From NCBI GenBank assembly GCA_002269645.1, contig NIVC01002783.1, positions 1 to 64,000 of the forward strand: a stretch of DNA of 64,000 bases, written 5' to 3'. The notes beneath the pieces were generated by a model, which worked only from the letters and a program-made list of their open reading frames with translations, was not told where the DNA came from and made no database searches. The translations under genes were made by a program, and so were the position numbers. The number at the start of each line of letters is the position of its first letter. Position 1 is the stretch's first letter. This DNA comes from Macrostomum lignano (taxonomy: Eukaryota). Of this stretch, positions 29,488 to 62,909 are shown piece by piece.

Positions 29488-29563
29488 ATGGCGCCAGAGG
29501 CCAAGCCGGCGCACACCAGGATGAGAAAGTACTCGGTCGTGGATCCGCAGATCGACCTGCTCA
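29488..29563 (+). CDS. Stomatin candidate alternative first exon 1a ([25 protein letters not shown])
   Basis: GATCGCCATGG Kozak context, donor A|GTAAGT, phase 1 matching the exon at 50066. Confidence 0.62.
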
Positions 29564-41500: not shown

Positions 41501-44500
41501 ACTCGCACGTCTTGAATGCGCATCCAGATGGAGTGAAAAACCTCTTGTTGGTTCACGCATCCAGATGAAGTGAAAAGCCTCTTGTTGGTTCACGCATCCA
41601 GATGGAGTGAAAAGCCTCTTGTTGGTTCACGCATCCAGATGGAGTGAAAAGCCTCTTGTTGGTTCACGCATCCAGATGGAGTGAAAAGCCTCTTGTTGGT
41701 TCACGCATCCAGATGAAGTGAAAAGCCTCTTGTTGGTTCACGTATCCAGATGGAGTGAAAAACCTCTTGTTGGTTCACGCATCCAGATGGAGTGAAAAGC
41801 CTCTTGTTGGTTCACGCATCCAGATGGAGTGAAAAGCCTCTTGTTGGTTCACGCATCCAGATGAAGTGAAAAGCCTCTTGTTGGTTCACGCATCCAGATG
41901 GAGTGAAAAGCCTCTTGTTAGTTCACGCATCCAGATGAAGTGAAAAGCCTCTTGTTGGTTCACGCATCCAGATGAAGTGAAAAGCCTCTTGTTGGTTCAC
42001 GCATCCAGATGAAGTGAAAAGCCTCTTGTTGGTTCACGCATCCAGATGGAGTGAAAAACCTCTTGTTGGTTCACGCATCCAGATGGAGCTAACAACCTCT
42101 TCTTGGTTAACGCATCCAGATGGAGCCAACAACCTCTTGTTGGTTCACGCATCCAGATGGAGCTAACAACCTCTTGTTGGTTCACGCATCCAGACGGAGC
42201 TAGCAACCTCTTGTTGGTTAACGCACCCAGATGGAGCTAACAACCTCTTGTTGGTTCACGCATCCAGATGGAGCTAGCAACCTCTTGTTGGTTCACGCAT
42301 CCAGATGGAGCTAACAACCTCTTCTTGGTTCACGCATCCAGATGGAGCCAACAACCTCTTGTTGGTTCACGCATCCAGATGGAGCTAGCAACCTCTTCTT
42401 GGTTCACGCATCCAGATGGAGCCAACAACCTCTTGTTGGTTCACGCATCCAGACGGAGCTAGCAACCTCTTGTTGGTTAACGCACCCAGATGGAGCTAAC
42501 AACCTCTTGTTGGTTAACGCACCCAGATGGAGCTAACAACCTCTTGTTGGTTAACGCACCCAGATGGAGCTAACAACCTCTTGTTGGTTAACGCACCCAG
42601 ATGGAGCTAACAACCTCTTGTTATTTCACGCAACTACTAGCGCGTAGATGGAGTTAAAAATCTTGTTTGTTCCAGCCCCACCGAGCCAGTAAATTTTTAC
42701 TCGTAGCAAAATTTTTAGCGAAAATCATATTTTTCGATGGTCTATTGCTGGATTTGAAAACAGGAAAACAGTTCTGCTCCAAGCACCCTGTTGGAGAACT
42801 AAGGTTGCTGAACTGTGTGTGTGTGTGTGGGTGTGTTTGCTAGAGGGTTAGAGTCAGCAATCTTGCAGAAACTTGATGTTGCGGATTAGCTCTCAACTTA
42901 ATCTGCTGCAGCTATGCAGCCAGTGCAGCCTATTCTATGTTGAGCTTTCCCTCGCTCAGCACTTCTCACTTTCTCTGCGTGAAGCTCGCTGCTCTAATTC
43001 AGCTCAGTTCATGCGCTGCCGATCAGAGAGAAACCAGCTGCCCCCGCAAGTATCTCTTTGATTTTGATTGACAGCTATGCGCCCCAGTTGAGTCCTGGCA
43101 GTTCAGCCAAGTGAATGCGAGATCTTCGATCCGTCTGAAGCGCCATTCTGCGCTTCCGCCTGCGCCAACAAAGAAGCAGCGGCAGAAAAGAAACTTTCTG
43201 AGTGCGAAATCAGCAGGTTTCAGCCTCTGCGCCTCATCTTTGCCAGGATAGTGAGGAGTTGCCATGCGGGCGGCCGCACAGAGGACAGAATGCCGGGGCG
43301 GGAGAGGGCTCGCATGGGGGAAAGTTCAGCTCACGTCGCCACTCAAGACTGGCTGTGAGGATCGGCAGGGGGTCGCCGATACCCCAGCCCCGGAGTAATT
43401 TAAGCATTAAGCCACTAAAACATACTGGGAAGGCTGGAATGAGCTTAGAGTGGCTCAGAGAGAACGGGGGCGGGTTGAGTCAATGCTGTCCTAGCAACAG
43501 CCATGATAGTGCTCTGGGATATGGAGCTCATGCTCAGAGTGAGTCGAAGTTGAAGCAGAGTTCCCTTCTTTACCATATAGCCGAAGTAGCTGCAGAGGAA
43601 ATCATTTTGCCCGCGTGGCCGGGGCATTTTTTAGAGACATTGTCAAAGCCCATACTTATCATTTCGTATGCTGCTTATTCCCTCTAATCCCCCCAACTCC
43701 CCCCCCCCGATTTGCAGTCGAATGAATCAGAATACAATGATCTATCTTATTAGAGTGGGCCAAACAGACTAACTCTGATATGAGATGCATTTCAATATTC
43801 CAGCAACTCCCGCCTCTCTTCTTTCAGAGCCGCGGTTGGGGGCGGTGGGGCAGTAAATTAATTGGTCCAACCTCATCAGCACTTGGGCAAAAAACCTCTT
43901 TCCCCCCATGGAGCATTAATTTCAGATGAATTGGTTCTGCAAATACGCGTATGTGGCTAAAAAGAGGAGGACAGACTGATGGGGACAGGTGAGTAAGTTT
44001 GCGCACACCCAGGGAACGCAGCTGAGTCCCCGTGTGACCTCCTCTTCCTCCACTGCGGCGGCAGCTGTTTCCAAAGGAAAAACAAGATCGCGTTTTTCTC
44101 CAACAATTATCTTTTTTTCTGCCCTCCCCCCTCTCTTGACGACCGCGACTTGCGTGAGCGCCCACTGGGCGGGGAGTGGGTTCCGCGGAGAGGAGCGCAG
44201 CAGTTTAGGATCACGTGACAGGAAATCGGAGCAATAGCGCGTTAGTGCAGGTGGGGAGGACGGTGGCCGCTCTGTGCCCGCTCCTCCGGACATAACTTCC
44301 CCCCCCCAGAATGGCTTGAGTCTTTGCCTCGCAACTCTCCCTTGTTCTGCCCCACCCATTTTTGGTCTCCCCTCCTCTCCACCTGAGCGATAGGGGAGTC
44401 AAATGCAAGGAAATCAAATTCCAGAAAAAATGGCTCTTCTGCCGCCCTGCTGCTGCTGCTGCTGCTACCGCTGGCGCACTTCAAGAAGAGACTCCACAGC

Positions 44501-47500
44501 AGCGGCAGTCCCGGCCTTCTCTGTCTCTCGCTTTCTCTCCCAGCCAACTGGGTGCCGAGGCGGCCGCCCCTGTCCTTCTCTCCCACCCAGCCATTCCGGC
44601 CACCCGGCAGATCCCCCTAAATCCTCTCAAAAGCAAGCACTAGCCAAGGCTGAGTCGATTCAGCCCAGGAGCAGCAGGCGAAGAACAGTTTAGAAGCATT
44701 TCTTCTTCTTTTTTCCGCCTAAAAAAGGAGTTAAGGACCCGTCTTCCTATACTCCAGTCACCGCCTCACGGGGAGGAGGCAAGTGTCACGGGCGACAAGG
44801 ATTTTCTTCCTGCATGCAAAGCATGGCCAGCGTTGAGCCAAGTGAGCCGTCACACCAGCAGGTGCCGGTCATGGGCCCCATGCGGGTCGGCAGCATGCGC
44901 AAGCAGCAGCAGGGCAGTCCGAGGGATTACGGTGAGTGAAGGGCGGCGAGAGAGCGGTCTCAGTCCGAGTTTGCTGTTGATTTTGAATATCAACGGGCTA
45001 TTCGTGATTTTCAACAGTCATTCACCTTTAGATCATCGCTGGTTTATCGCACCTTTGCGTATTGTCTCCTCAAAGTGTCTATTGCAATTAGCATTTGTCT
45101 ACTCCAGGTGTCTATCGCTATTAGCATTTGTCTACTCCAGGTGTCTATCGCTATTAGCATTTGTCTACTCAAGGTGTCTATCGCTATTAGTCACTTACTT
45201 CCTCAAAGTGTCTATCGCTATTAATCATTTGTCTACTCCAGGTGTCTATCGCTATTAGTCATTTGTCTACTCAAGGTGTCTATCGCTATTAGCATTTGTC
45301 TACTCCAGGTGTCTATCGCTATTAGTCATTTGTCTACTCCAGGTGTCTATCGCTATTAGCATTTGTCTACTCAAGGTGTCTATCGCTATTAGTCATTTGT
45401 CTACTCCAGGTGTCTATCGCTATTAGCATTTGTCTACTCCAGGTGTCTATCGCTATTAGTCATTTGTCTACTCCAGGTGTCTATCGCTATTAGCATTTGT
45501 CTACTCAAGGTGTCTATCGCTATTAGTCATTTGTCTACTCCAGGTGTCTATCGCTATTAGCATTTGTCTACTCCAGGTGTCTATCGCTATTAGCATTTGT
45601 CTACTCAAGGTGTCTATCGCTATTAGTCACTTACTTCCTCAAAGTGTCTATCGCTATTAATCATTTGTCTACTCCAGGTGTCTATCGCTATTAGCATTTG
45701 TCTACTCCAGGTGTCTATCGCTATTAGTCATTTGTCTACTCCAGGTGTCTATCGCTATTAGCATTTGTCTACTCCAGGTGTCTATCGCTATTAGTCATTT
45801 GTCTACTCCAGGTGTCTATCGCTATTAGTCATTTGTCTACTCCAGGTGTCTATCGCTATTAGTCATTTGTCTACTCCAGGTGTCTATCGCTATTAGCCAC
45901 TTATTTCCTCAAAGTGTCTACCACTCTTAGCCACTTGTCTCCTCAAGGTGTCTATCGCTATTAGCCATTTGTCTACTCCATGTGTCTATCGCTATTAGTC
46001 ATTTGTCTACTCCAGGTGTCTATCGCTATTAGCATTTGTCTACTCCAGGTGTCTATCGCTATTAGTCATTTGTCTACTCCAGGTGTCTATCGCTATTAGC
46101 ATTTGTCTACTCAAGGTGTCTATCGCTATTAGTCATTTGTCTACTCCAGGTGTCTATCGCTATTAGCATTTGTCTACTCCAGGTGTCTATCGCTATTAGC
46201 ATTTGTCTACTCAAGGTGTCTATCGCTATTAGTCACTTACTTCCTCAAAGTGTCTATCGCTATTAATCATTTGTCTACTCCAGGTGTCTATCGCTATTAG
46301 CATTTGTCTACTCCAGGTGTCTATCGCTATTAGTCATTTGTCTACTCCAGGTGTCTATCGCTATTAGCATTTGTCTACTCCAGGTGTCTATCGCTATTAG
46401 TCATTTGTCTACTCCAGGTGTCTATCGCTATTAGTCATTTGTCTACTCCAGGTGTCTATCGCTATTAGTCATTTGTCTACTCCAGGTGTCTATCGCTATT
46501 AGCCACTTATTTCCTCAAAGTGTCTACCACTCTTAGCCACTTGTCTCCTCAAGGTGTATATCGCTATTAGCCACTTGTCTTCTCAAGGTGTCTATCGCTA
46601 TTAGTCATTTGTCTACTCCAGGTGTCTATCGCTATTAGTCATTTGTCTACTCCAGGTGTCTATCGCTATTAGCATTTGTCTACTCCAGGTGTCTATCGCT
46701 ATTAGCCACTTATTTCCTCAAAGTGTCTACCACTCTTAGCCACTTGTCTCCTCAAGGTGTCTATCGCTATTAGCCACTTGTCTTCTCAAGGTGTCTATCG
46801 CTATTAGCCATTTGTCTTCTCAAGGTGTCTATCGCTATTAGTCATTTGTCTACACCTGACCCTACTTCAGCTCTCTCCCCTGAGTCAGGTTTGCTGAAAT
46901 ATAGTTAGTTCAAACCAGTCTGTGACAGGAAGATGCCAAAACAGTTCAGCATTGACTGCTAGATCTAGCTATCGAGATTGTAACAGCCAGCAGTTCAATT
47001 CACACTCACAGAGAGTGGTCCCTCCGATTCTTTTAGTGTTGATTGAGCCGTGAATTATTTAATCGGCCATTGGAGTTCCCTCTCTCTCTCTATCCCTCAT
47101 TTTCTGGATATCGCGCGGAGCAATGGGTTTTCTTGATCCCCCCAGCGACTGCCTCCGCTACAGTTGCGGCGAGATAAAAGGCTATGGGGAGAGAGCGGGA
47201 AGTGTCGCTGAAGTCGCCGACTTCGCCCGACCCCCTGTTGCTGCAAACTGTGCGAAGCCCCCTTGACGCAAAAACACGCTCTGTCACTGCACTCGCATTT
47301 TATAATGGAATATCAACAACTTCATTTTTGTTCGACCACGCTGAGCAGTGCTCAAGGGAGGGTTCCCGCTTGGCCGGGGCGTGCTATTCCCTGTTTACTT
47401 TCTTTGCATCAAAATTCTGTTTGAAGTTGGAACAGAATCTGCTTCAACTCCCGAATCTTCAACGCTTTTATCAGTGGCGCATGCGGGCATCTCTCCCAGT

Positions 47501-50500
47501 AGGTTCAAAACTCGGCTTCTAGCTGAAATTTGCTTTGGTTGCTGCTTTTAGTAGTGAATTAAGTGAATAAATTCAGTGGTGTAGCTCGGACCGAAGCTGA
47601 TTCTATTTAAGTCTATTAGTCAATTGGAACAGCTAATAAGGTTCTATGATCAGCCAATTAAAAGTTTATGATCAAGCAATAAACAGTTTATGATCAATCA
47701 ATAAACAGTATTTTTTCTAATCAATCAATAAACAGTTTAGGATCAATCAATTAACAGTTTATGACCAGTCAATAAACAGTTTATGATCAATCAAGATTAT
47801 GATGATTTATAATAAATCAATAAACAGCTTCGGATGAATCAATAAACAGCTTCGGATGAATCAATAAACAGCTTCGGATTAATCAATAAACAGTTTATGA
47901 TCAATCAATAAACAGTTTAGGATCAAGCAGTAAACAGTTTATGATCAATCAGTAAACAGTTTATGATCAATCAATAAACAGTTAAGGATCAAGCAGTAAA
48001 CAGTTTATGATCAATCAGTAAACAGTTTATGATCAGTCAATAAACAGTTTAAGATCAAGCAGTAAACAGTTTATGATCAATCAGTAAACAGTTTATGATC
48101 AGTCAATAAACAGTTTAAGATCAAGCAGTAAACAGTTTATGGTCAATCAATAAACAGTTTATGGTCAATCAATAAACATTTTAGGATCAAAAAATAAAAA
48201 GTTTATGATCAGTCAATAAACAGTTTAGGATTAATCAATAAACAGTTTATGATTAGTCAATAAACAGTTTAAGATCAAGCAGTAAACAGTTTATGGTCAA
48301 TCAGCAAAAAGTTTAGGATTAAGCAGTAAACAGTTTATGGTCAATCAGCAAACATTTTAGGATCAAGCAGTAAACAGTTTATGGTCAATCAATAAACATT
48401 TTAGGATAAAAAAATAAAAAGTTTATGATCAGTCAATAAACAGTTTAGGATCAGCCTATGCTCAGCCTAGAATCAATATGAAGCAAAGGACAACCAATTG
48501 TCACAACAAAAATCACCCCAGAGACTTATCGCACAGTGAAGCGTGCTCTCCCACTATCGATTTGCTCAGTAATTAATTGGCAGCCACGTATTTCGGCTGT
48601 GCAAGCACCGTCTCTCGGTTCAAGGCACTCTGCAACGATTGGCCCCACTTACTTTTGTTAGCACAACTGCTTTTCAAAGTGCCATCCAGCTGAAGAGGCA
48701 AAATGACTGGCACATTGGCCGGTGTCGTGTGCAATATAATCTTAGTTTTTCGATTTCCTATTGCTATTTCTATTTTCTATTACCACGTCTCTTCCACCCC
48801 TTCTCCCGTCTCCTCCGCCCCCTTCTTCCATCTCCTCCGCCCCCTTCTTCCATCTCCTCCGCCCCCTTCTTCCGTCTCCTCCGCCCCCTTCTACCGTCTC
48901 TTCCGCCCCTTCTCCCGTCTCCTCCGCCCCTTCTTCCGTCTCTTCCGCCCCCTCCCGCCTCTTCCGCCTCTTCTCCCGTCTCTTCCGATCCCTTCTCCCG
49001 TCTCTTCCGCCCCCATCTCCTGTCTCTTCCGCCCTTCCTCATTCTTCCGCCCCTTCTCTTGTCTCTTCCGCCCCCTCCTTCCATCTCTTTCCACCCTCCT
49101 TGCACCTTTTCTCCCTTCCATACTACTTAGTTATCAATAATAGGGAGCGAATTTATAGTTGATAATTTATAGTTGTATTGAGTTTCTACAGGGAAGTTTA
49201 TTAAATAGAATGTAGATGGGAGTTTCTACACCTGTTTTCACTTGTCGCTCGCAGCAGGTGTTGGGCTGCCAATCTGCCAGATCGCCTTAGCCTTAGCACT
49301 GGCCTTAGCTTCTTGGACCCAAGCCGTGGGCAAGCGAAATTGGATAAGGGATAGGGCCAGACCAGCTGTCCAATCATATGGCAACCTCATCGATTTGCCC
49401 AGAGTTCAATCCAAAGTCAGAGCGAGAAGTGCAGAAGCTAGTATAAATATGTGAGGCCCGCTCTCTAGAACAGCGAGCCTTCTAAAGTGACAAATACTAA
49501 ACGATAGAACAAATAAAGCTGCGAGACAATAATGCACGCCGCCGCCATGCGAAGTAGAGAGAAACCGCCAGCCACAGGACCTCTGAGTGATCCCAGTGAG
49601 CTCTTTGGGAAGCTTTATTACAGCTGAAGATAGACACACTTTTATGTGCTATTTAACTTGTATTTTATCTATTTTCTCCAGATAACTACATGTTAAAATC
49701 TGTAGATAGAGACAAACCGTTTTTAGTATAGTGGACTAGCACACTCCCCCCTTTGGGGGTTGGCCTTAATGAAATCTTGACGTTGCAAATATTATTTAAA
49801 ATTATATCACTGCGCTAAAAATAGCTAGAGAGCACTTTAATAAAGCTACAAAATTATTCACAATGGTACGATTGGAAAAAGATTAGATGGACACATATAA
49901 ATACGAGTATACTGGGACAGACAGACAGACAGACAGACTAAGACGGCACGAAGATACGACTACTTTCAAATGCTTATAGTTCAATCCTAACGGAACAAAA
50001 TTCCCGAGACTTATTAACACGGGAACAGTGCCTATAATACCCCATCTCTCCATTGCCCACCGCAGGCCAGCAGCGGGACTCCCAGGGCATGGGATTCTGC
50101 GGTGGCGTCCTCATCATCCTGTCGTACGCGCTCATTGTGGTGACTCTACCGCTGTCATTGTGCCTCTGCATCAAGGTAAGCACAAACTAATAAGACTTCC
50201 AATTTAGCTCTATAAATAGCTTAGAAACATATTATGATTTTATTGAACCGAGATACTGAGTGAGTGTTAAAGGAATTCGTGGGCTATATGAAAATTAACT
50301 GTCTGGGTTTGGTTTCAATTAAATTTTCAATATCAGATAATCAGCGAAACGATTCCTAAAAGCCGATAGCACTGAAAGCTTGTTATGGTTGGGGCAGGTG
50401 CTGGCAGCCCACAGATGGACTGGGGAGGTGCTGGCAACACACAGATGGACTGAGGAGGTGCTGGCAACCCACAAACGAATTGGAAAATGTGCTGGCAACC

Positions 50501-53500
50501 CGCAGATGGACTGGGGAGGTGCTGGCAACCCACAAACGAATTGGAAAAGGTGCTGGCAACCCGCAGATGGACTGAGAGAGGTGTTAGCAACCCACAGATG
50601 GACTGGGGGAGGTGTTAGCAACCCACAGATGGACTGGGAGAGGTGCTGGCAACCCACAAATGAATTAGAAAAGGTGCTGGCAACCCGCAGATGGACTGAG
50701 GGAGGTGTTAGCAACCCACAGATGGACTGGGGAGAGGTGTTAGCAACCCACAGATGGACTGGGGAGAGGTGTTAGCAACCCACAGATGGACTGGGGGAGG
50801 AGCTGGCAACCTGCAGATGGACTGGGGAGGAGCTGGCAACCCACAGATGGACTGGGGAGGAGCTGGCAACCCGCAGATGGACTGGGGGAGGAGCTGGCAA
50901 CCCACATATGGACTGGGGGAGGAGCTGGCAACCCACAGATGGACTGGGGGAGGTGTTAGCAACCCACAGATGGACTGGGGGAGGTGTTAGCAACCCACAG
51001 ATGGACTGGGGGAGGAGCTGGCAACCCAAAGATGCGCTACACTGAAGCAACCCCGTTTTAGCGCGCATCATCAGGTGCAGAGCTACCAGTAGGGAAATCG
51101 ATGCTACCAACCCAAACCTTCCCACTCTGACCAGGTGGTGGCCGAATACGAGCGGGCCGTGATCTTCCGCCTTGGTCGAATACTCGAAGGCGGCGCCAAA
51201 GGCCCCGGCCTGTTCTTCATTGTGCCCTGCATGGACATCATTCGCAAGGTGGACCTGCGCACAGTGACCTTCGATGTGCCGCCGCAGGAGGTGAGCAAGC
51301 TTCAACTGGTTGCTAATTGCGAAAGCTAGGACCCCCAAAGACAACTAAAATTTGACAGGACGCCAGACCATGGACAACAGTAGCAAACGACAGGCCATGG
51401 TTTTTATGTCAATTGTCTGAAATATGATTAATAAGTGTTATTAAAGGTATGCCACAACGGGGATCGAACTCAGGTCTTATGGCGCAATCGATGCATTGAG
51501 CATCTGGCCAAGGTTACAAAAATAGCTGACTGGACTAACTTCTGGGGTTTTTAGCGGTCACAAAAATAATAGCAGCGCGAGTGGCTATTTTCTGAAATAG
51601 CAAAGCCAATCAAGGCAGTTCAGTTCTATAAAGTGAGGATAAATTTCCCGAAGGGCGCCGCTCTGCGCTGGGGTAATTGGATTTCTTATTATTCATTGTT
51701 TCGCGGCGAGCGCCTCATGAGGGAGGGGCCGCCGGGCTTCGGCCCTCAGTGTCGGAGCGAGTCGGCCGGTCGCGTGCGTGGAGGGCGGGGACTCCGCATT
51801 TCTGTCTTATTTTTCTAATCAATTCCGCCGCTGGCAGACCGGGGCTGGCCAGGCGGGGGGGGGTCGCTGGGAAGGAGGATGCAGGAAGGTACGCCAGGGA
51901 AGTCTGGAAGAGGGCGGAGAGGGAGAGAAAATGAAGAGAGCACTTCAGGATTCAGGTGAGTAGGATTTGTCCCAGAGTCTAGGGTCTGACTACTCCTGAA
52001 TATTTACAGAAAAAATGCATTAAAAAGCCAGCGCAAAAACGTCTCCATCCCAGGCGTTGGACAAGTATGGAGCGTCGAATTTGGTAAAAAGAAAGCAAAG
52101 CCGATCAGGCTGGCTTTTTGGTTGGCTGACGAACTAACAGAGACGGGAGTGATAGAATCACATTGCGGACACACTGTAGCTGTGTTTGCTTGCATAGGCC
52201 GCACACTGACTGATGATGAGTCCGTTCAGAGATGCTGGGGTGTCAGCACAGTAGTGATGGAGCTTTGCAGTTTGCGCACATCTTCATCCTGCTCTATAGT
52301 GCGGCCATTTTGGGCTTACTGGCTGGGATGACCCCATCTCCCAGAGTCTAATCTCCTCATTATTCCGCATCTCAATTACCACCTAGGCCATCCCGCGCCT
52401 GTGACCAGAATCACCATCCCTTCACCTTCCCAAATCCCAAATGGGAATTATCTTGTTTCTCGCCTGTCGTCCCTTCATGCAACACCGATCCATTAATCGG
52501 GTCAGGCCTTCCTCCTTTGACCCGGGACCTCTCAGTCTGCCGCGTTAATCTGGGCCTCTCAAGTGTGAGCGACGAGTGCGTGAATGCAGCCCTGTCGTCC
52601 GTCGTCTTGTGCAGCGCGTCGCGATGATGGACGGATCTAAGGGGCTGGGTGAGAGGCGGGCAGGGCTGTACCACACCGAGTGTTCATTTTGCCGTGACGC
52701 ATTCTCTTTATGATTTATCATATTTTTTTCACCGCAATGAGTGCAAGATGATTTTCAGTGCATGCTTTCTATTCAAGTGGAAATGCTTGCAATATTCTAA
52801 GAATCCTTGACTTTGTCTGTCCGGTGCAGGTGCTCACGAAGGACTCTGTCACGGTGGCCGTTGACGCGGTCGTGTACTACAGAATCTACAACCCAGTGAT
52901 CGCCGTAACTAATGTTGAAGACGCGGACAGGTCCACCCGCCTGCTGGCCGCCACCACCCTGCGCAACGTGCTGGGCACGAAGAACCTGTCCGAGATTCTG
53001 TCGGAACGCGAGAGCATCAGCAACATGATGCAGGCGAGTGCTCAGGAATTGTGCTTGCCATTTCTCATGCCTAATAATGCCATGTTGAATTGAGCTCAAA
53101 GAGGTGCTGCTCTCAGTCTCAAAGAGTTGCTTTTGCGTTTTTTGCTACATTGCATCGCTAAAACTGTCGGGTCTGGCAGCAAATCGGTCTGTTGCTTGAG
53201 GCAAAAAGTGAAACAGCGAAGGCATTGCAGTCTACTGTATCTACACGCATTCTCATGCTTCCTACTCAGCTCTCACGGCATCCCTGCCTCAGGCTGAGAA
53301 AGCGCCCACTGAACTACTGTAGTGTGTAGCATTTTTCTTGGCGCGAAGTGCCTGTCTGTGCCTCAGTCCGCATCGCTACTATGCATGGATCCGCCTGGCA
53401 ACTCTACAAACTAAAAGCGAAATGCACAAAAAGCAGACAGGCGGAAAGAAGGGGCAGGGCATGCAGGGTGAGAGGCAACGAGGAAGCGGCGATGATGAGG

Positions 53501-56500
53501 AAGAGCAGGGCAGCTGGGAGGGCGGCGCAGAGGTGGCGGCGCGCGGCGTCAGCTGGTGCCAGGAAGGCTTGTCAGCTTTGCGTGACTGATGCTGAGCAAA
53601 CATTGCCCTCCCCGGTCATCTGCTGGCCACCACCCTCAGCCGCAGCTGCAGGGTGCATGGAAGATTGCCTTTTTAGTGACGGTCAAACTGCGCTACCCGC
53701 CAGCCGTCCAGCCATCAGCACCAACTTTTCTGATCATGAAAAAGTGTCGGGGGAAAGTTTATCCCGGACCTTCCGTCCGCCGCCTCTCCGACCGAGTAAT
53801 TTAATTTTTTTTCACCTCACTTCTCAGTGCTCAAACAGTAGTCCTGCTGCAGCGTTTCAGTGTCCAGTCCATCTCCTTTTTCAGCTTGTCAGTCACACGC
53901 AAGCTAGCCAGTCCAATTTAAAGCCCAGTCAAAGCTCCAATCCATCGCGTCTGAGAACAAATTGGTTGCATGCGGCTCAAAGCCGGAGGCGCCACACTCC
54001 GTGTTCAATTTCCTGAACTGGGCCGCCAGCATCCGTTTTCAGACTGAAAGTGGGTGTTAACCAGGAAATTTGCCATCAAAGACGTCCTGCCTTTTTTGCT
54101 GCCTTTGCTGGGGAGGCCAAAATTTATTCTTTGCCTTGATTTTACCGCAACAGGCCAATTTTCTTGCTTGCTTGATGCTTTTGAGACAGGCTCAGTGTAG
54201 CAGCACTCGCTTAAGTGAATTTTTTCTGCATTATCTAGAAAGGAAGCAATAAAGTATGTTTTGTTTGTCATATTTGTGTCCGAAGTGATATTTTCCATCC
54301 ATATTCATCTAGATACTAGCTCGTAAACTAGGGGATTCACCTGATAGCCTTGACCTTCATGACTCACTTGATAGCCTTGACCCTTCCTGACTCACTTGAT
54401 AGCCTTGACCTTCCTGACTCACTTGATAGCCTTGACCTTCCTGACTCACTTGATAGCCTTGACCTTCCTGACTCACTTGATAGCCTTGACCCTTCCTGAC
54501 TCACTTGATAGCCTTGACCCTTCCTGACTCACTTGATAGCCTTGACCCTTCCTGACTCACTTGATAGCCATGACCCTCCCTGACCCTCTTTCGATTGCCA
54601 TGACCCTCCCTGACCCTCTTTCGATTGCCATGACCCTCCCTGACCCTCTTTCGATTGCCTTGACCCTCTCTGACACTCTTTAGATTGCCTTGACCCTCTC
54701 TGACACTATTTCGATTGCCTTGACCCTCCCGGACCATCTCTCGATTGCCTTGACCCTCCCTGATCATCTCTCGATTCCCTTGACCCTCCCTGATCATCTT
54801 TCGATTGCAATGACCCTCCTTGATGATCTCTCGATTGCCTTGACCCTCCCTGATCATCTTTAGATTGCCTTGACCCTCCCTAACTCTCCCTCGATTGCCT
54901 TGACCCTCCCTGACTCTCCCTCGATTGCCTTGACCCTCTCTGACACTCTTTCGATTGCCTTGACCCTCCCTGACTATCCCTCGATTGCCTTGACCCTCTC
55001 TGACCATCTCTCGATTGCCTTGACCCTCCCTGACCATCTCTCGATTGCCTTGACCTTCCCTGACTCTCCCTCGATTGCCTTGACCCTTCTGACTCTCTCT
55101 CGATTGCCTTGACCCTCTCTGACACCCTTTCGATTGCCTTGACCCTCTCTGACCATCTCTCGATTGCCTTGACCCTCTCTGACACCCTTTCGATTGCCTT
55201 GACCCTCTCTGACCATCTCTCGATTGCCTTGACCCTCCCTGACCATCTCTCGATTGCCTTGACCCTCTCTGACACCCTTTCGATTGCCTTGACCCTCTCT
55301 GACCATCTCTCGATTGCCTCGACCCTCCCTGACTCTCCCTCGATTGCCTTGACCCTCCCTGACTCTCCCTCGATTGCCTTGACCCTCTCTGACACTCTTT
55401 CGATTGCCTTGACCCTCCCTGACTCTCCCTCGATTGCCTTGACCCTCCCTGACTCTCCCTCGATCGGCTTCACCCTCCCTGACCATCGAATGCCATCTTG
55501 ACTAGGCCCGACTCTGTGGACACAAGATCAAGCATGTAGCGGCCAGTTGGCCAACAAAAGTCTTCATCGAACTCGATGGAGGGCACCCCCATCGCCCGAA
55601 TCTGTTTGCAATTCTAGGCCATGCTGGATGACGCCACAGACCCCTGGGGTGTCAAGGTGGAGCGAGTTGAGGTGTAAGTCTCAGACACTTTGATTCTATT
55701 AATTTTAACTCGACGCCCCTCCCGCCCCTCCCACTTTTCCTATTTTTTCCTTCCGACGGCTGACGCAACTCGCAGGAGTCCCTCGACGACGCCACAGACC
55801 CCTGGGGTGTCAAGGTGGAGAGGGTCGAGGTGTAAGTGAAAACGATCTGGACTGCTGACCCTCGAAGGCGTAGGGAAAGCAAATTCTGAGCTGCTATTTT
55901 TGTCGCTTCTGTGGGGAAATTCGGGGCGAGGGGATGATATTAGCGACACCCGGCTTGTCGGTGGCGGCTTTCCTGCACTGCACTGGCTGGCATTGCACTG
56001 TGCTTCACTGGTGGCGGCACGGCGCGTTCGCGGTCTGGTTAATCTCTGTTTACTGTTTATGAATACTCGATTATTGATGTAGTGCTGGAAAATGTGCGAA
56101 TTTGTGCCCTAGTTTCAAATTCTTCATACCTTCAGAGTGAACTAGAGCTGATCAGTATAGGTCACTCTAATATCTAGTGTCAGAACGAACTAAAGCTGAT
56201 CAGTATAGGTCACTCCAATATCTAGTGTCAGAACGAACTAGAGCTGATCAGTATAGGTCACTCCAATATCTAGTGCCAGAGTGAACTAGAGCTGATCAGT
56301 ATAGGTCAGTATGTCACTATGATTAATAGCTAGTGTCGGAGTGAACTATAGAGCTGATCAGTATGTCACTATGACTAATAGCTAGTGTCGGAGTGACCTA
56401 CAGTTGATCAGTCCAATAGCCGTTATCGCAAATTCGATTTCATTTTCAAATTTAGAAATCGCACTCATTGTAAACCTTTTTCCATCGGATATTAACCTCA

Positions 56501-57947
56501 TTTAGTGTGCAACTTTCCTCTTGCTTTTATAATTTGCTTCAAAATTGAGCAGCAATTTAGTTACTGATCAGTTAAAAAATTGCACATTTTATACAGTTTC
56601 AGTAAAACAAATTGAACGAAAAAATCCGGAAAATTTAGCGCTGTTATATCCCATAGCAATCGACAGAGTTTCGTGCTATTTTAAACACCTTCCTCTCCAA
56701 CTGTATGTAGCTGCTATTGCTGATGCCTGCGCCCAGCATGCCACAGGACTGACTGGCGGCCTGTAACTGACGCTGCTTATCCAGGAAGTCCGAAGCACCA
56801 TTGCTGGCTTTTTCTTTCTTACCAAGCTGTTTGTTGTTGCTGCATTGAGCCAGAGAATCTGTATCCTGACCACCTATATTCAAAGCTTCTATTCTTTTCA
56901 TCAAACACATTTTAAGCTTCTCCATCCAGTCATGCACTCAGTTTTTTTTGCACTTTCCTTTCTCGCTTCTCTATTTACTAGAGCTCACGGTCTCCATCAG
57001 TCAGTCGCCCAGCTTCCTCCCCGGGGCCCAGAGGAGGAGGGATAAGTGGAGAGGAGGGAGAGGGGAAAGTGTAGAGAGTGGCAGGCCAAGGCTGCACCGG
57101 CGTCTGCGACAAACTCCTTCCAGCCGCAGTAGCCGGCGGCCCGGTTTCCCGCTCGCTCTTTTTTTTCCTATCCTAGCCGACCGCTCGCCTTCGCCCGTCT
57201 GTCCGCACCGCCCCGCCTCCGCCACTCCGCATTCCAGCAAAGATGTCCGACTGCCAGTGCAACTGCAGCGGGCCATGGCTGCCGAGGCCGAGGCTGCGAG
57301 AGAGGCTCGCGCCAAGGTGAGAGCTGGGTCTGGGGCTGGGGCTGGGGCTGGGGCTGGGGCTGGGGCTGGGGCTGGGGCTGGGGCTGGGGCTGGGGCTGGG
57401 GCTGGGGTTGGGGCTGGGGTTGGGGCTGGGGCTGGGGCTGGGGCTGGGGCTGGGGCTGGGGCTGGGGCTGGGGCTGGGGCTGGGGCTGGGGCTGGGGCTG
57501 GGGCTGGGGCTGGGGCTGGGGCTGGGGCTGGGAGTTTGGATCTGGACAGGGGGCTGGGCTGAAGTGTACGGCTCGGTTGAGAGGAAAAATGAGCTGGCAA
57601 AGCAGCCCAGAAACAGTAATCAAAAAATCAATAATCAGAATGAAATAGTCCAGAAAGACTACAGAAGCTGCTATAAAACTTAATCGGGAAACAATTCTCT
57701 TGGATTGATTAACAAAGTCAGCAAAGCGAGAGCCGAACCGACAATTCAGGTGATCGCAGCTGAGGGCGAGCAGAAGGCCTCCCGGGCCCTGAAGGAGGCC
57801 GCCGACGTCATCAACGAGTCGCCGTTCGCGCTGCAGCTGCGCTACCTGCAGACGCTCAACACGATCTCGGCCGAGAAGAATTCCACCATCATATTCCCGC
57901 TGCCTCTGGAGATTCTGTCCAACTTCATGCACAGGCCGCCTCTGTGA
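29488..57947 (+). CDS. STOM-like: Stomatin / MEC-2-like SPFH (band 7) protein, multi-exon, alternatively spliced (~283-306 aa)
   Basis: Common exons 50066-50175 (hydrophobic hairpin [27 protein letters not shown]), 51135-51290 ([15 protein letters not shown]...[14 protein letters not shown]), 52830-53033 ([19 protein letters not shown]...[16 protein letters not shown]), 55618-55673 or 55776-55831 ([15 protein letters not shown]), 57238-57316 ([26 protein letters not shown]) and 57750-57947 (VIAAEGE...LQLRYLQTL...[11 protein letters not shown]). Phases are consistent. The first exon is 29488-29563, 44814-44931 or 49547-49595. Confidence 0.95.
31460..33622 (+). repeat. 32-bp minisatellite (AGAAGTGACTGTCAGTGACTGAACAGCCGCAT)n
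   Basis: About 67 units; rare variants recur at ~1053-bp spacing (31864 and 32917). Confidence 0.97.
34558..35085 (+). repeat. 42-bp minisatellite (ACTGCAGATCTACATGGATAGATCAGAGCTCTAGCTGTAATA)n
   Basis: About 12.5 units; produces the [14 protein letters not shown] pseudo-ORF 34497-35096. Confidence 0.96.
35925..36320 (+). repeat. Degenerate repeat (GAGGATTCCCCCAATGG core)
   Basis: Recurrent motif with ~20-bp spacing. Confidence 0.8.
37624..40453. mobile_element. hAT/Charlie-like MITE whose interior is a 2.6-kb purine tract
   Basis: TIRs CAGGGGTCGGCAAACT (37624-37639) and AGTTCGCCAACCCCTG (40438-40453), 14/16 match; Charlie-type GCGGGCCGGA subterminal motifs at 40368-40437. No matching TSD found. 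Confidence 0.55.
37690..40335 (+). repeat. Homopurine (G/A) compound repeat, ~2.6 kb
   Basis: Units such as GGGAGATAAGGGAGGGGAGAGGAGAGAA, with very few pyrimidines; source of the 903-aa LSSP pseudo-ORF. Confidence 0.97.
41515..42625 (+). repeat. 37-bp minisatellite with two sub-types
   Basis: GCATCCAGATGGAGTGAAAAGCCTCTTGTTGGTTCAC up to ~42080, then GCATCCAGATGGAGCTAACAACCTCTTGTTGGTTCAC. Confidence 0.96.
44814..44931 (+). CDS. Stomatin candidate alternative first exon 1b ([39 protein letters not shown])
   Basis: In-frame ATGs at 44814 and 44823, donor G|GTGAGT, phase 1. Confidence 0.68.
45065..46855 (+). repeat. 33/34-bp minisatellite (GGTGTCTATCGCTATTAG(T)CATTTGTCTACTCCA)n
   Basis: About 53 units starting ~130 nt after the exon 1b donor. 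Confidence 0.97.
47640..48455 (+). repeat. AT-rich 22/23-bp minisatellite (AATAAACAGTTTATGATCAATC)n
   Basis: Degenerate units read directly. Confidence 0.92.
48785..49115 (+). repeat. Pyrimidine-rich repeat (CTCCTCCGCCCCTTCTTCCGT-like)
   Basis: Read directly. Confidence 0.88.
49547..49595 (+). CDS. Stomatin candidate alternative first exon 1c ([16 protein letters not shown])
   Basis: GCCGCCGCCATG context, TATAAATA at ~49442, donor A|GTGAGC, phase 1. Confidence 0.6.
50392..51030 (+). repeat. ~30-bp G-rich minisatellite (GCTGGCAACCCACAGATGGACTGGGGGAGGT)n
   Basis: About 20 units in intron 50176-51134. Confidence 0.94.
51450..51515 (-). mobile_element. tRNA-derived SINE-like head
   Basis: Minus strand TGGCCAGATGC (A-box-like)...GAGTTCGATCC (B-box-like). 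Confidence 0.3.
54335..55490 (+). repeat. 27-30-bp minisatellite whose unit drifts along the array
   Basis: TTGATAGCCTTGACCTTCCTGACTCAC changes to TCGATTGCCTTGACCCTCTCTGACCATCTC; ends ~130 nt before the first duplicated exon. Confidence 0.95.
55618..55673 (+). CDS. Stomatin mutually exclusive exon A ([19 protein letters not shown])
   Basis: TTCTAG| acceptor, |GTAAGT donor, 56 nt, phase 0 to phase 2. Confidence 0.88.
55776..55831 (+). CDS. Stomatin mutually exclusive exon B ([19 protein letters not shown])
   Basis: CTCGCAG| acceptor with CTGAC branch candidate at 55760-55764, |GTAAGT donor, 56 nt, same phases as exon A. Confidence 0.85.
56135..56410 (+). repeat. ~48-bp minisatellite (GAGCTGATCAGTATAGGTCACTCCAATATCTAGTGTCAGAACGAACTA)n
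   Basis: About 5 degenerate units. Confidence 0.85.
57324..57532 (+). repeat. (GGGGCT)n hexamer repeat immediately after a splice donor
   Basis: About 35 units starting 7 nt after the donor at 57317. Confidence 0.97.
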
Positions 57948-58284: not shown

Positions 58285-58444
58285 GTTAATTTTTTTTTAA
58301 GAACAAGGAAGCGAGCTACTCGCTTATACTTATATTTTATCTCTGAAATAGGAATAATAACAACCAAAAAAGTCAAACTTTGTAAACTCAGTTGTTCCAC
58401 TTTTATGCAATTCCTTTCCACTTGGTAAAGTCAACCACACTCCA

Positions 58445-58842
58445 TCCCTGTGTGCACTCCCACAGCCACCCAATCCAAGGTTCGCCGTCTCCTCTTACCC
58501 CACAACCCCCACCTCACTCTATCCTGTGTACACTCCCACAGCCAACCCAATCCAACGTTCATCGTCTCCTACCCTCAGACCCCCACCTCACTCTATCCTG
58601 TGTACACTCCCACAGCCAACCCAATCCAACGTTCATCGTCTCCTACCCTCAGACCCCCACCTCACTCTATCCTGTGTACATTCTCACAGCCAACCCAATC
58701 CAACGTTCACCGTCTCCTACCCCCAAACCCCACCTCACTCTATCCTGTGTACACTCCCACAGCCAACCCAATCAAACGTTCACCGTCTCCTACCCCAAAC
58801 CCCACCTCACTCTATCCTGTGTACACTCCCACAGCCAAACCA
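58445..58842 (+). repeat. 74-bp C-rich minisatellite
   Basis: About 5.5 units (ACCTCACTCT at 58511, 58585 and onward). Confidence 0.93.
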
Positions 58843-60188
58843 ATTTACAACCAGAAAAATAACGAAAGAAAACAGCAGAAAATGAAAAATGTGCTAAAGG
58901 CAAAGCGTTTCAGTTGCTGATAATTTCCATTCGCTTTGAGCTCGTCATTCTGACTTATTTTTAAAATGACAATGATGATGAGATAGAGAAGCTGGAAGAA
59001 CGATCATCTATTTAGATATCTGTATTATTGTCGGAACAAGAAACTTTTCTGCGCATGCCTATCCTGATGTGTTTTTTCTATAGCAATGGTATTAGTAGCC
59101 GTCTGATCCAAGGACTTCTTAATTAAACGATACTTAGTCGTCCTTGGTCTGGACATTTTAACTAATTATATTTTCTCGGGCAAAGTTTTAAACTATTCAT
59201 AAAATTATTGATTAACCGATGTTAACAATTTTTGCATACAACAAACCATACGTGAGCATACATGAGTGAGTACAGTCACAAGAGTAAACTGGACTGGCGA
59301 AAATTGCTGTGCACTCTATATTTACTATCTGAAAAAGTACTCAGATATTTATAATGCAGCTTATTTACCATTGTCAGTTTTCTATCCTATCAATTTCATT
59401 TTGCTGTCACTTTTCTGGAATCGAGCAAGTCTACCTTAGTACCCGTATGTACTCCTTTGAAGTCAATCAAAGCAGCTCCTTGTTTTAATCTTCTCTTCTT
59501 ACCCTGATGCAGTTGTAAGCAGCAATAGTTTTTGTGACCGCCCCTTCTAATATTTTAAATCTCATCTGCTGCTCCACCGAACCAATAACCTAGTGCTTAT
59601 CGGTTTTCACATTTTCCAGAAAGAAACATGTCGCTGTAAAATTCAAAAGAAGAAAAAGCATTGGTTACCAAAAAATAAATACACATTACCCAAATCTCTT
59701 GCTAATAAAACAATACAACTGACTTGCGGGGCAGCACTTGAACCCAGAATCTGCAGGCAAGCGCTGCAGAGCCGAACGGAGCCTCAGAAAATATGCCGAG
59801 TTCTTCGATGCGTGAAAGCCTTCTGCTCTGCCCAGCCCCCCCCCCACGCTACTGTGCCCATGGCATTGGCCCGTCCCCAAGGGGCAGCCTTCGACTTCCT
59901 TTCTGGGCGCAGCAGGGGAGAAGCATCGATGATTGGGACATTGGTAGGAATATTCGACCACAGTATTGGAGAGCAGACTCTGCTTGGCTGTTGCTTTAAA
60001 ATCCTAAGTCTTAAAAATAGCTGGTCTGCTTGTAAGGAGGCTTAGAAACGTCCAGAACGGCAAAATATTCTGTTGAATATATGAGAAGTCTCTCTACGCA
60101 GTGCAATGGTTTGAGTCCATCAGAAATCCGTGAACTAGTACAGGGAATTGCATACAACAATAAATACATGTAGCACCACCCAGCTGTA

Positions 60189-60530: not shown

Positions 60531-61820
60531 CGTCTTGTACTCGTATTATCGCAAGTATCCGCATTTATTTAATTCAACAATAATAGCAATTTCAGTTACG
60601 AGTGCAACTTAACCGCAGTCATATTGTTGACATCTGTGCAGGTACACTGCAACTGCTAGCTGGGGTACCAGACTCCTGCACTGATGCACGGCTTTTCTCT
60701 ATACGTATAGAATTTGATTCCACGGTGGATGAATGCAGCTCAATGCTGAAGAATATTGGCACTTCTGTTACAGTTTAGCTAACGAGTACGAGTAATTCTG
60801 ACTTCTTCTTTGCCAGCCTATTTCCTTGTTGCTTCTGCTTTGAAAAAGACACAAAAAGACCGGCGCAGGGGATCGGGGATCCGCAGTTTCTACTGGAAAA
60901 TTTCCTCGAATCGTCGTACTTCGGAAAAATTTCCGAAGCTTTTAGCCTTTAGGAAGCTCGAACCCTTGTCCTGGGGCGGTGTTGTACATGTATGCGAATG
61001 TTCTTCAAATTTATAACGTTGCGAATACTTGATTTTCTCGATTAGCCAGGGGAAGCTTTTTTCTGGTTTTTATATCCAGCCTTGATATACCAACTTCGAA
61101 ATAAGAGTAGCTACGAACCTGCTTTTTCCTATGGAAAAGACTTCCATTTGTTAGCTAGTAAAGGCTCGCATATTGTAGGAGCACATTCAATTATATACAC
61201 AACGAACTTGAATCCCTGTCCTCCTGTACGCTCGTACAATGGTTGTCGCATAGAACGACAATTAGGCCTGACATGCAAAAGTCATCACAGGTCGCTTAGC
61301 CAGCGTGGCGATCAAATCCTTCCTTGGTCTCGTACGTCATCGAGCTACTTTTACTGTAGCTCTTATTTCATAAACTCGCACTAGTAAATGTCTTAAAACG
61401 ACACACTCGTAACACAGGTAATGCAAAACTTCATAAAGACACCAATTCGACTTTGGAGGGCCGCAGATTTCACGCACCAGCCTCGTGGCACATGTGGAAC
61501 TATCAATTTTGGAAAGCTCACGCTTCGATGGGCCCTAAATAATAGATGCGTGCAGTCCTGAAGTGATTGTTATTTGCACAGCGTCCAGGTGACCCGCAAA
61601 AGCAGATAAGCTTATATGACTAATCCAACTCTGGATTTGCTGCCACCAGTCAGAAATTATTGCAAACTTAAGCGACAAAACGGCAAACAAGAACAGATAA
61701 GCTTGGTTATCGATGGGTAAACTAAATAAAATGCAACGACGCTGCGATTTCGCGTTCCATGCGGCCACAAAAGACCCGTTTTCATCTATCGCCAATGCCA
61801 GGAACGTCTTGAAATCGTCC

Positions 61821-62909
61821 ATGTTCTCAGAAGCCAGAATGAGCAGCCAGTACGACTTGGACAACAACCTGGCTGTGCAGCTGCACTTCTACTCGCATCT
61901 CATCGCCTTCCCCATCCTGATCATTCTGGGTTCCGCCCTCAATACAGTCTGCATCGTGGTCATGCTCAAACAGAAGGTATTTCCTCCCTCAGCCAGCGCC
62001 TTCATGCTCTGGATCAGTTTCAACGACCTCCTCGCTCTTCTGTTGAAGGCTACAACCCATTTCCTGGAGGAGTTGGCCAGCTACAATGCAGACTGGTGGC
62101 CTTACCAACGAGGTTCGTTGAAGAACTCCAGCCTCCTGGCCTGTCAAGCGTACATGGCCATCACTTACTACTTTCTCTGCGGATGTCCGTTCTACCTAGC
62201 CGGCCTCACCTTGCAACGACTGCTCATCACTCTATTTCCTATTCGTCGGCCATCTGTGCGAGTCTCAATTGCTGTACTAGTTGTGCTCACCTGCGTGGCA
62301 CTAACTTTTCCGGTATTTCGCATCGTGCTGGTGGACTATCAACCGGACTCGAATGCGCCCTGCAACCTAACGAGCTTTGACAGTCCCATCACCAAAGCAT
62401 TCTATTATTACCAGACTGTTTTGTCTAATCTGTGCATATTTGCCTTTCTGCTATTCGGCACCGTGTGCATCTCTGGCGTGCTGTACTGTCGACGGCCCAC
62501 AGGACGGACACGCACTACTCAGCGCGTGTCTCGCACTCTTCTGCTGATGAACTTCAGCTTCTTAATCACCTACCTGCCTGTGGGTGTCTACCAGTTGGTC
62601 ATGGTCAGTATTGGCGGGGAGCCTAACAGTCACAGGGTATTATTTGGCTTCCTAAACTCAATAATGTACCTGAACTTTGCTTGCAACGGTCTCAGCTATT
62701 TGGCTAGTCAGCGGTTTCGCACCTGTGCAGTTCAGTTCTTTAGTAGTGCATGCGGCTCTTCCAGCGGAGCGCGTAACGGCTGCTGTTTGTGGCGATGCGT
62801 CACGGCTATGCGAGGACGACGAAGTCCAGTGGTCTCACCGCCCGACTGCTCGGCAAAATGCACTGCCTATAGCCAGGAACCCCATCACGTCCATGATATG
62901 ACCTACTGA
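61821..62909 (+). CDS. Intronless orphan rhodopsin-class (class A) GPCR, peptide/chemoreceptor-like
   Basis: Seven hydrophobic segments: GSALN (TM1), FNDLL (TM2), ACQ (Cys before TM3), LTLQRLLITLFP (DRY position), CNL in ECL2, LITYLP (TM6), NFACNGLSY (TM7), Cys-rich tail. The start could be 61821 or 61839; the ORF-track start at 61713 is probably upstream of the true start. Confidence 0.9.
   Translation: MFSEARMSSQYDLDNNLAVQLHFYSHLIAFPILIILGSALNTVCIVVMLKQKVFPPSASAFMLWISFNDLLALLLKATTHFLEELASYNADWWPYQRGSLKNSSLLACQAYMAITYYFLCGCPFYLAGLTLQRLLITLFPIRRPSVRVSIAVLVVLTCVALTFPVFRIVLVDYQPDSNAPCNLTSFDSPITKAFYYYQTVLSNLCIFAFLLFGTVCISGVLYCRRPTGRTRTTQRVSRTLLLMNFSFLITYLPVGVYQLVMVSIGGEPNSHRVLFGFLNSIMYLNFACNGLSYLASQRFRTCAVQFFSSACGSSSGARNGCCLWRCVTAMRGRRSPVVSPPDCSAKCTAYSQEPHHVHDMTY

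Follow-up and report, generated by a model that had tools for sequence, protein, structure and literature searches.

Two tandem 56-nt exons in the SPFH domain of a Macrostomum lignano stomatin/MEC-2-like gene probably form an old mutually exclusive pair

Why would a gene of the stomatin family carry, side by side, two exons that encode almost the same 19 residues? The question is raised by a stomatin/MEC-2-like gene on the + strand of contig NIVC01002783.1 of the flatworm Macrostomum lignano (assembly Mlig_3_7), of which we examined the first 64 kb; "the window" refers below to this whole 64-kb stretch. Stomatin-family proteins, among them the MEC-2 protein of nematode touch, form 16-subunit membrane domes around channels and transporters; their adaptation to different partners is poorly understood. 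We number the exons of the gene 2 to 7, designate the duplicated pair 5a and 5b, and name the versions of exon 5 by their first two residues (AM, NM, or ES). From the evidence presented here, we consider 5a and 5b likely to be a mutually exclusive exon pair that originated in an old tandem exon duplication.

The two copies lie next to each other between the end of exon 4 (53033) and the start of exon 6 (57238). Each is 56 nucleotides (nt) long, is entered in phase 0 and left in phase 2, and shares its last codon with the following exon. The copies agree at 46 of 56 nt and at 17 of 19 residues. The description given by a first-pass annotation of this DNA was borne out in its details: the exons are 102 nt apart, have intact acceptors and identical GTAAGT donors, and show all of the synonymous differences listed there (CTG/CTC, GAT/GAC, CGA/AGG, and GTT/GTC), while their translations confirm that AM versus ES is the only residue change. 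The introns flanking 5a and 5b were likewise described as unrelated, and we detected no similarity between them. The acceptor before 5a ends in ttctag and that before 5b in ctcgcag, and the AG and GTAAGT sites are conserved in a paralogue. The likeness of 5a and 5b cannot be attributed to chance, given that a 33-nt exact core common to both has, by itself, a blastn E value of 1e-13. An assembly artefact was also considered and ruled out, as the pair is found on four contigs, one of which carries a diverged paralogue.

The reading frame restricts how the two copies can be combined. When both are included, translation ends at a TGA stop at 57751-57753, at the start of exon 7, exactly where the earlier frame argument had placed it. 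Our gene model showed in addition that skipping both copies shifts the frame and leads to a stop a few codons into exon 7. With a single copy of exon 5, the protein aligns with stomatins from end to end. One copy is thus expected per transcript; double inclusion or double skipping would yield a frameshifted, truncated protein that lacks the coiled-coil and C-terminal oligomerisation parts and would presumably be non-productive. The coiled-coils and the C-terminal strand have been reported to be necessary for assembly of the stomatin oligomer (bioRxiv 10.1101/2025.08.30.673307).

The identity of the gene is clear from several searches. The window protein contains a Band 7/SPFH domain (Pfam PF01145, E = 9.6e-40, 136.9 bits against a cut-off of 23.6) and matches the cryo-electron microscopy (cryo-EM) chain 9wkz_A of human stomatin with E = 1.9e-121 over query residues 4-259, a full-length alignment that includes the hairpin, the coiled-coil, and the C-terminal strand. 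Its top homologues are named stomatin, MEC-2, or band 7, and the best matches are M. lignano Band 7 proteins. Two of these, P0002 and P0003, are 100% identical to the 5a isoform, with the N-terminus as the sole difference. P0003 is the product of BOX15_Mlig019436g1, whose locus is 100% identical, with matching coordinates, to window positions 38814-63947. Three upstream first exons, one of them a candidate, have phase-1 GT donors that match the phase-1 acceptor of exon 2, and the gene therefore spans at least 29488-57947.

We compared the window gene with four other M. lignano loci. L003, a 98% identical copy of the window gene, has the same pair with the same 102-nt spacer, and its 5b is identical to the window 5b. 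L001, a paralogue, has a 5a (NM) and a 5b (ES) that are 263 nt apart, and L009, which is about 94-97% identical to L001, also has a 5a (NM) and a 5b (ES). A further paralogue, L002 (NIVC01000556.1, 15501-21010), carries a 5a-type exon (NM) only, and no 5b remnant was detectable at this locus. Both copies are consequently present on four contigs (window, L003, L001, and L009). Between the window gene and the paralogues, the synonymous divergence (dS) of the coding sequence is 0.83-1.0 and the ratio of non-synonymous to synonymous divergence (dN/dS) is about 0.01-0.02; the introns have no detectable similarity save for a few bases beside the exons.

Against this background, the conservation of each copy is informative. 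The 5b exons of the window gene and L001 differ at nine bases; all nine differences are synonymous, none is non-synonymous, and the ES dipeptide is identical. By our own arithmetic, with a synonymous-site fraction of about 0.23, the neutral probability of nine synonymous changes out of nine is about 2e-6. For 5a, the same comparison with the first two codons excluded gave five synonymous and no non-synonymous differences, and the xM form of the dipeptide is kept. The 5′ ends of the exons group by type, reading GCC/AAC/AAT-ATG-CTG-GAT in 5a and GAG-TCC/TCA-CTC-GAC in 5b. Within L001, 5a and 5b differ at 15 of 54 bases, and the proportion of synonymous differences (pS) is 0.87, which indicates that the duplication is older than the split of these paralogues. 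These comparisons support the view, already put forward by the first-pass annotation, that both copies are under purifying selection and that the duplication is old rather than fresh: the pair persists in a paralogue at a dS of about 0.8, where introns can no longer be aligned. Synonymous-only divergence together with intact splice sites ruled out both a fresh duplication and a dead pseudo-exon.

One part of the window pair probably has a different history. The 33-nt core (55630-55662, identical to 55788-55820) contains no differing codon among 11, whereas four of the five other shared codons differ (Fisher exact P = 0.003, our own calculation). In L001, by contrast, the copies differ at seven positions over the same stretch. 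The identical core of the window gene thus looks like a gene-conversion tract. As to L002, the three pairwise dS values (0.83, 0.94, and 1.01) are too alike to separate a loss of 5b at this locus from a branching that preceded the duplication.

Having found both copies conserved, we consider which of them is used. The ES dipeptide is present in the protein models P0006 (BOX15_Mlig004665g1, at L001) and P0121 (BOX15_Mlig017186g1, at L009). P0005 (UniProt A0A1I8HZJ1), which comes from a separate annotation, is the same as P0006 except that it has NM in place of ES. The BOX15 models are not ab initio predictions but were built from RNA-seq assembled by StringTie and TACO, plus a de novo transcriptome (PMC5730564). 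By these models, 5b is spliced in and 5a is skipped in the paralogue. For the window gene itself, we infer the use of 5b from its conservation.

Where in the protein does the exchange take place? Alignment to the cryo-EM chains, with our own residue count, equates exon 5 with residues 176-194 of human stomatin and the variable dipeptide with S176-T177. In the AlphaFold model of the ES paralogue, whose predicted local distance difference test score (pLDDT) has a mean of 72 and is about 90 in the exon 5 region, residues 179-180 lie within a helix (170-188) that is followed by a strand (190-201) and by a long coiled-coil helix (204-246). Exon 5 thus covers the last SPFH2 helix from its midpoint onwards, together with the greater part of the final beta-strand, which leads into the coiled-coil CC1. 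The first-pass annotation had put the dipeptide next to the W-G motif at the boundary between the SPFH domain and the coiled-coil; this placement does not hold, as the model puts it in mid-helix, 8-9 residues before W-G. The first variable residue precedes D186, the equivalent of human D183, by seven positions, or about two helical turns, and the two residues probably share one face of the helix. According to the structure of the human 16-mer, a salt bridge links D183 to R14 in the N-terminal loop, and F19 is lodged between SPFH1 and SPFH2 (bioRxiv 10.1101/2025.08.30.673307). In a comparison of about 120 animal stomatins, only the dipeptide varies freely within the exon (SS, TS, TM, AM, NM, ES, and others), and the remainder hardly changes. 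AM probably represents the ancestral flatworm xM type, and ES a derived form that adds an acidic residue. The exon swap may finely adjust the surface of SPFH2; the first-pass annotation had suggested that it could tune oligomerisation or channel partners.

The first-pass annotation had called for a search of orthologues for the duplicated exon, and the outcome was mixed. Duplicates were found in two gastropods, whereas Biomphalaria, Schistosoma mekongi, and Spirometra have a single copy of exon 5. In Babylonia areolata, the RefSeq isoforms X1 and X2 differ only in the exon 5 equivalent, one form being TSLDECTDPWGIRVERVEI, and the genome has two 56-nt exons in tandem between the equivalents of exons 4 and 6. 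Haliotis cracherodii has the same type of variant (SCLDECTDPWGIRVERVE) upstream of the canonical exon, which implies that the gastropod pair is older than the split between Babylonia and Haliotis. At the Haliotis locus (L007, about 92440-92495), we also noted a decayed third copy (ISCDDTSSPWGPWVESVN), 145 nt downstream of the canonical exon and without an AG acceptor or GT donor. A protein search with a 90-residue query around the gastropod variant exon returned short fragments only, mostly of environmental origin.

The gastropod and Macrostomum pairs have much in common: a homologous 56-nt exon of the same phase is present in tandem between the same neighbouring exons, and annotated isoforms differ only there. 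However, the gastropod variant copy is located upstream, 0.8-4.4 kb away, and has five of 19 residues changed (A to C, VK to IR, and V to I/M), whereas the Macrostomum variant copy is located downstream, 102-263 nt away, and has only its first two residues changed. Given these differences in position, spacing, and substitutions, the simplest reading is that the two duplications were independent. Decapods (the band 7 protein AGAP004871-like of Penaeus and Macrobrachium) resemble Macrostomum in that their isoforms vary in a single short, homologous stretch of the SPFH domain and also have many alternative N-termini, but they differ in that another SPFH segment varies, and their variation is known from annotated isoforms. 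Two consecutive in-frame copies of an SPFH segment were observed in gene models of Daphnia magna (P0122), Timema podura (P0126), and Papilio xuthus (P0092), the segment in Daphnia and Timema being of the kind that varies in decapods, and a similarly doubled segment in P0008 and P0015 of rotifers and P0009 of Brugia pahangi. These doubled segments may represent alternative exons strung together or duplications produced in assembly.

Taken one step further, the start of exon 5 could be a place at which the SPFH2 helix, facing the groove into which the N-terminal loop docks, is tuned repeatedly, with independent duplications fitting the protein to alternative N-termini or to client channels. We put this forward as speculation that is probably wrong as a whole. 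It would entail that the choice between 5a and 5b is coupled to the choice of first exon (1a, 1b, or the candidate 1c); because the alternative first exons encode the N-terminal segment, such a link is at least a concrete hypothesis. In a variant of this proposal, ES would retain the ancestral xS state seen outside flatworms, and the duplication would be much older than Macrostomum. A conserved pair that alters two residues of the SPFH2 helix near the docking site of the N-terminal loop points to a surface that is evolutionarily adjusted, and the gastropod duplication points in the same direction. Because M. lignano is tractable by transgenesis and RNA interference, exon-specific tests are feasible.

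Several observations weigh against a working, mutually exclusive pair in the window gene. First, both annotated models of this gene (P0002 and P0003) contain 5a. An exact-sequence look-up of their ES versions in the protein collection found none, and a search with the C-terminal half of the ES isoform found ES in models of the paralogue only. The absence of ES models is weak evidence, since TACO was run with --isoform-frac 0.75 (PMC5730564), a setting that, in our reading, discards minor isoforms. Second, the ES models from L001 and L009 do not count as separate evidence, given that the contigs are 94-97% identical and that multi-mapping reads were allowed. Third, L002 lacks 5b, which means that one gene copy, at least, does without the second exon. 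Fourth, the premature stops produced by including or skipping both copies are in the last exon, so that decay dependent on exon junctions is not expected. Finally, the exchange is limited to two residues on the surface, at the sites where the exon varies most among animals, and the functional difference may be small.

Some of these observations would be explained if 5b were kept in the window gene but not used. The paralogues would then have split the work, with the window type relying on 5a, the L001 type mostly on 5b, and L002 doing without 5b, and no switch would operate within the window gene. Both window-type models use 5a, both GenBank models of the L001 type use 5b, and L002 has either lost 5b or never possessed one; moreover, splice forms divided between gene duplicates are a known pattern (PMC4417111). 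We regard this alternative as unlikely because the window 5b has an intact AG, an intact GTAAGT, and an open frame, is identical in L003, and has undergone no amino-acid change relative to the L001 5b despite nine synonymous differences. In addition, the 33-nt tract that it shares with 5a suggests continuing sequence exchange rather than decay, and the annotation appears to retain dominant isoforms only.

The frame and the modest difference between the proteins bear on another alternative, namely that the pair serves mainly to regulate the amount of stomatin through non-productive transcripts and that the two-residue difference is nearly neutral. The 56-nt length does place everything but single inclusion out of frame, and the two sites that distinguish the proteins are the least conserved ones in the exon. 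On the other hand, ES is exactly preserved between paralogues at a dS of about 0.8 or more and xM is kept in 5a, which argues for selection on the protein difference, and the gastropod variant, with its five amino-acid changes, has been kept across Babylonia and Haliotis. Stops in the last exon are, furthermore, poor substrates for nonsense-mediated mRNA decay. We consider a mainly regulatory role quite improbable. The FGFR2 exons IIIb and IIIc offer a comparison, as they are a frame-enforced exclusive pair whose length is not a multiple of three and whose double inclusion or skipping creates a premature stop. The M. lignano exons share with them a length, 56 nt, that is not a multiple of three; they differ in that both premature stops are in the last exon, where the junction-dependent route of decay is not expected to act.

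If 5a and 5b are mutually exclusive, as we propose, how might the choice be made? In the window gene and the paralogues alike, the acceptor context of 5a is t-rich and ends in ttctag, and that of 5b is c/g-rich and ends in cgcag. The choice would probably be made by trans-acting splicing factors that act on these very different 3′ splice-site regions, an explanation that we prefer but that is unproven. U12-type incompatibility of the kind found in JNK1 was ruled out: the donors near the pair are GTAAGT and GTGAGA or GCGAGT, are combined with AG acceptors, and are thus U2-type. They do not match the U12 donor consensus.

A steric explanation, as in exons 2 and 3 of alpha-tropomyosin, would have the branch point too near the 5a donor for 5a to be spliced to 5b. 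The 102-nt intron contains a candidate branch point, TTAAC, whose A (at 55708) is 35 nt from the 5a donor, and this is followed by a polypyrimidine tract (about 55716-55754) with 19 of 20 pyrimidines. The sole candidate close to the acceptor, CTGAC (A at 55763), is 12 nt from the AG and has no pyrimidine tract downstream. However, the branch point in the 102-nt intron is a candidate only, and the equivalent intron of L001 has 263 nt and no comparable branch-point arrangement, so that the mechanism would not be conserved. Steric hindrance is therefore conceivable, though we would not bet on it.

Competing RNA structures, in which a docking site pairs with a selector as in Dscam1 and 14-3-3 zeta, are a further candidate, for which the first-pass annotation had proposed to look in the flanking introns. 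Tandem duplication can create such structures (PMC6071210), and a 22-mer within the intron (55945-55966) shows 73% complementarity to the core that is identical in the two exons. This 22-mer is, however, one of eleven similar inverted repeats in 921 nt, and nothing is conserved in the introns of the paralogues. A search for inverted repeats and a comparison of RNAduplex predictions with shuffled sequences yielded nothing above chance: in the window and L001, the best exon-intron and intron-intron duplexes were no stronger than shuffled ones, with nearly all |z| values below 2 and an extreme of -2.1. Control of the choice by competing structures is accordingly very hard to credit.

Mutually exclusive exons derived from tandem duplication are well known as a phenomenon. 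Examples are exons 5a/5b of SCN alpha-subunits, exons 7a/7b of ATE1, and 29 exon clusters in 27 C. elegans genes. The M. lignano pair has features of this class: neighbouring, homologous exons that agree in length and phase and have separate splice sites, a short protein difference, and purifying selection on both copies. It is distinguished by its occurrence in a flatworm gene of the stomatin family, by a difference of just two residues, and by the fact that exclusivity is read here from sequence and gene models. The pair is, in this sense, a real but ordinary case of alternative splicing.

Within the stomatin family, C. elegans mec-2 undergoes MEC-8-dependent splicing, and its isoforms differ in function between cell types (PMC8934639). 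Unlike 5a and 5b, the mec-2 alternatives concern the C-terminus, where there are short and long forms and a 2.3-kb cassette exon, and are not exclusive SPFH exons. Our literature search turned up no description of mutually exclusive exons for genes of the stomatin, MEC-2, or band 7 type or for Macrostomum. The statement of the first-pass annotation that it knew of no such switch in stomatin thus stands as far as papers are concerned, but not for databases: RefSeq already has the Babylonia areolata isoforms that differ only in this exon, and both protein forms are publicly available for the M. lignano paralogue as well. There is also a lesson for annotation in that such exon pairs are collapsed to one isoform or mis-modelled, and some arthropod and rotifer models seem to string duplicated segments together.

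The coordinates of the exons and of a neighbouring repeat are collected in the table below.

Table. Exons of the stomatin/MEC-2-like gene, and features of the introns around the duplicated pair, in the window.
Feature	Coordinates	Strand	Remarks
Alternative first coding exon 1a	29488..29563	+	phase-1 donor A/gtaagt; found by tblastn with the P0002 N-terminus, 100% identity
Alternative first coding exon 1b (...SPRDY-G)	44814..44931	+	phase-1 donor G/gtgagt; found by tblastn with the P0003 N-terminus, 100%; used by BOX15_Mlig019436g1
Candidate first coding exon 1c	49532..49595	+	phase-1 donor A/gtgagc; found by tblastn with the P0004 N-terminus, 76% identity, E = 4e-9
Exon 2, juxtamembrane segment and intramembrane hairpin	50066..50175	+	
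Exon 3, SPFH domain (...FDVPPQE)	51135..51290	+	
Exon 4, SPFH domain (VLTKDSVTV...ESISNMMQ)	52830..53033	+	Q/AM junction confirmed by the transcript-derived P0002 and P0003
30-nt minisatellite, about 39 copies	54343..55483	+	fills much of the intron upstream of 5a
Exon 5a	55618..55673	+	56 nt; copy in both annotated models of the window gene
Intron between 5a and 5b	55674..55775	+	102 nt
Exon 5b	55776..55831	+	56 nt; kept in the paralogue, whose annotated transcripts use 5b
Exon 6, start of coiled-coil CC1	57238..57316	+	
Exon 7, last coding exon (...FMHRPPL)	57750..57947	+	stop TGA 57945-57947

Exons 1a and 1b and the candidate 1c encode differing N-terminal peptides and are scattered across 20 kb upstream of exon 2. 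Exon 1c is homologous to the first exon of the paralogues and is used by no model of the window gene. Many annotated N-terminal variants are likewise present in mollusc and crustacean orthologues. A point that the first-pass annotation had overlooked is that the donor of exon 4 is a GC donor (CAG/gcgagt, 53034-53039) in the window gene and in its 98% identical copy L003, whereas both paralogues have GT (gtgagt) at this site, as do five other species. Two UniProt models of the window gene, P0012 and P0161, read through the exon 4 donor (into KDVRLP) and omit both copies of exon 5. Given the GC donor, this omission is probably a mis-prediction.

Downstream of the stomatin gene, at 61701-62906 on the + strand, is an intronless open reading frame of 402 codons with a weak match to the rhodopsin-family 7TM domain PF00001 (E = 2.6e-4; 21 bits, below the cut-off of 30.5), which may be a G protein-coupled receptor gene. 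At a comparable position in L001, a gene for a 413-residue protein with no Pfam match has been called.

The window is also rich in minisatellites with periods of 20-74 nt, many of them in introns of the stomatin gene. Besides the one that precedes exon 5a, examples are found at 4142-5076, 25693-28362, 31461-33623, 41519-42632, 45062-46853, 50390-51034, and 58434-58844. The region from exon 4 to exon 6 is 43 nt shorter overall in L003 than in the window, and the intron between exons 6 and 7 contains (GCTGGG)35 at 57323-57532. A further stretch of about 2.5 kb (37746-40309) is almost purely purine on the + strand and consists of units such as GGAGAGGAGAGGAGAGAAGGGAGAGAAGGGAGG; between 38001 and 40000, the GC skew reaches 0.98 and the AT skew 0.91.

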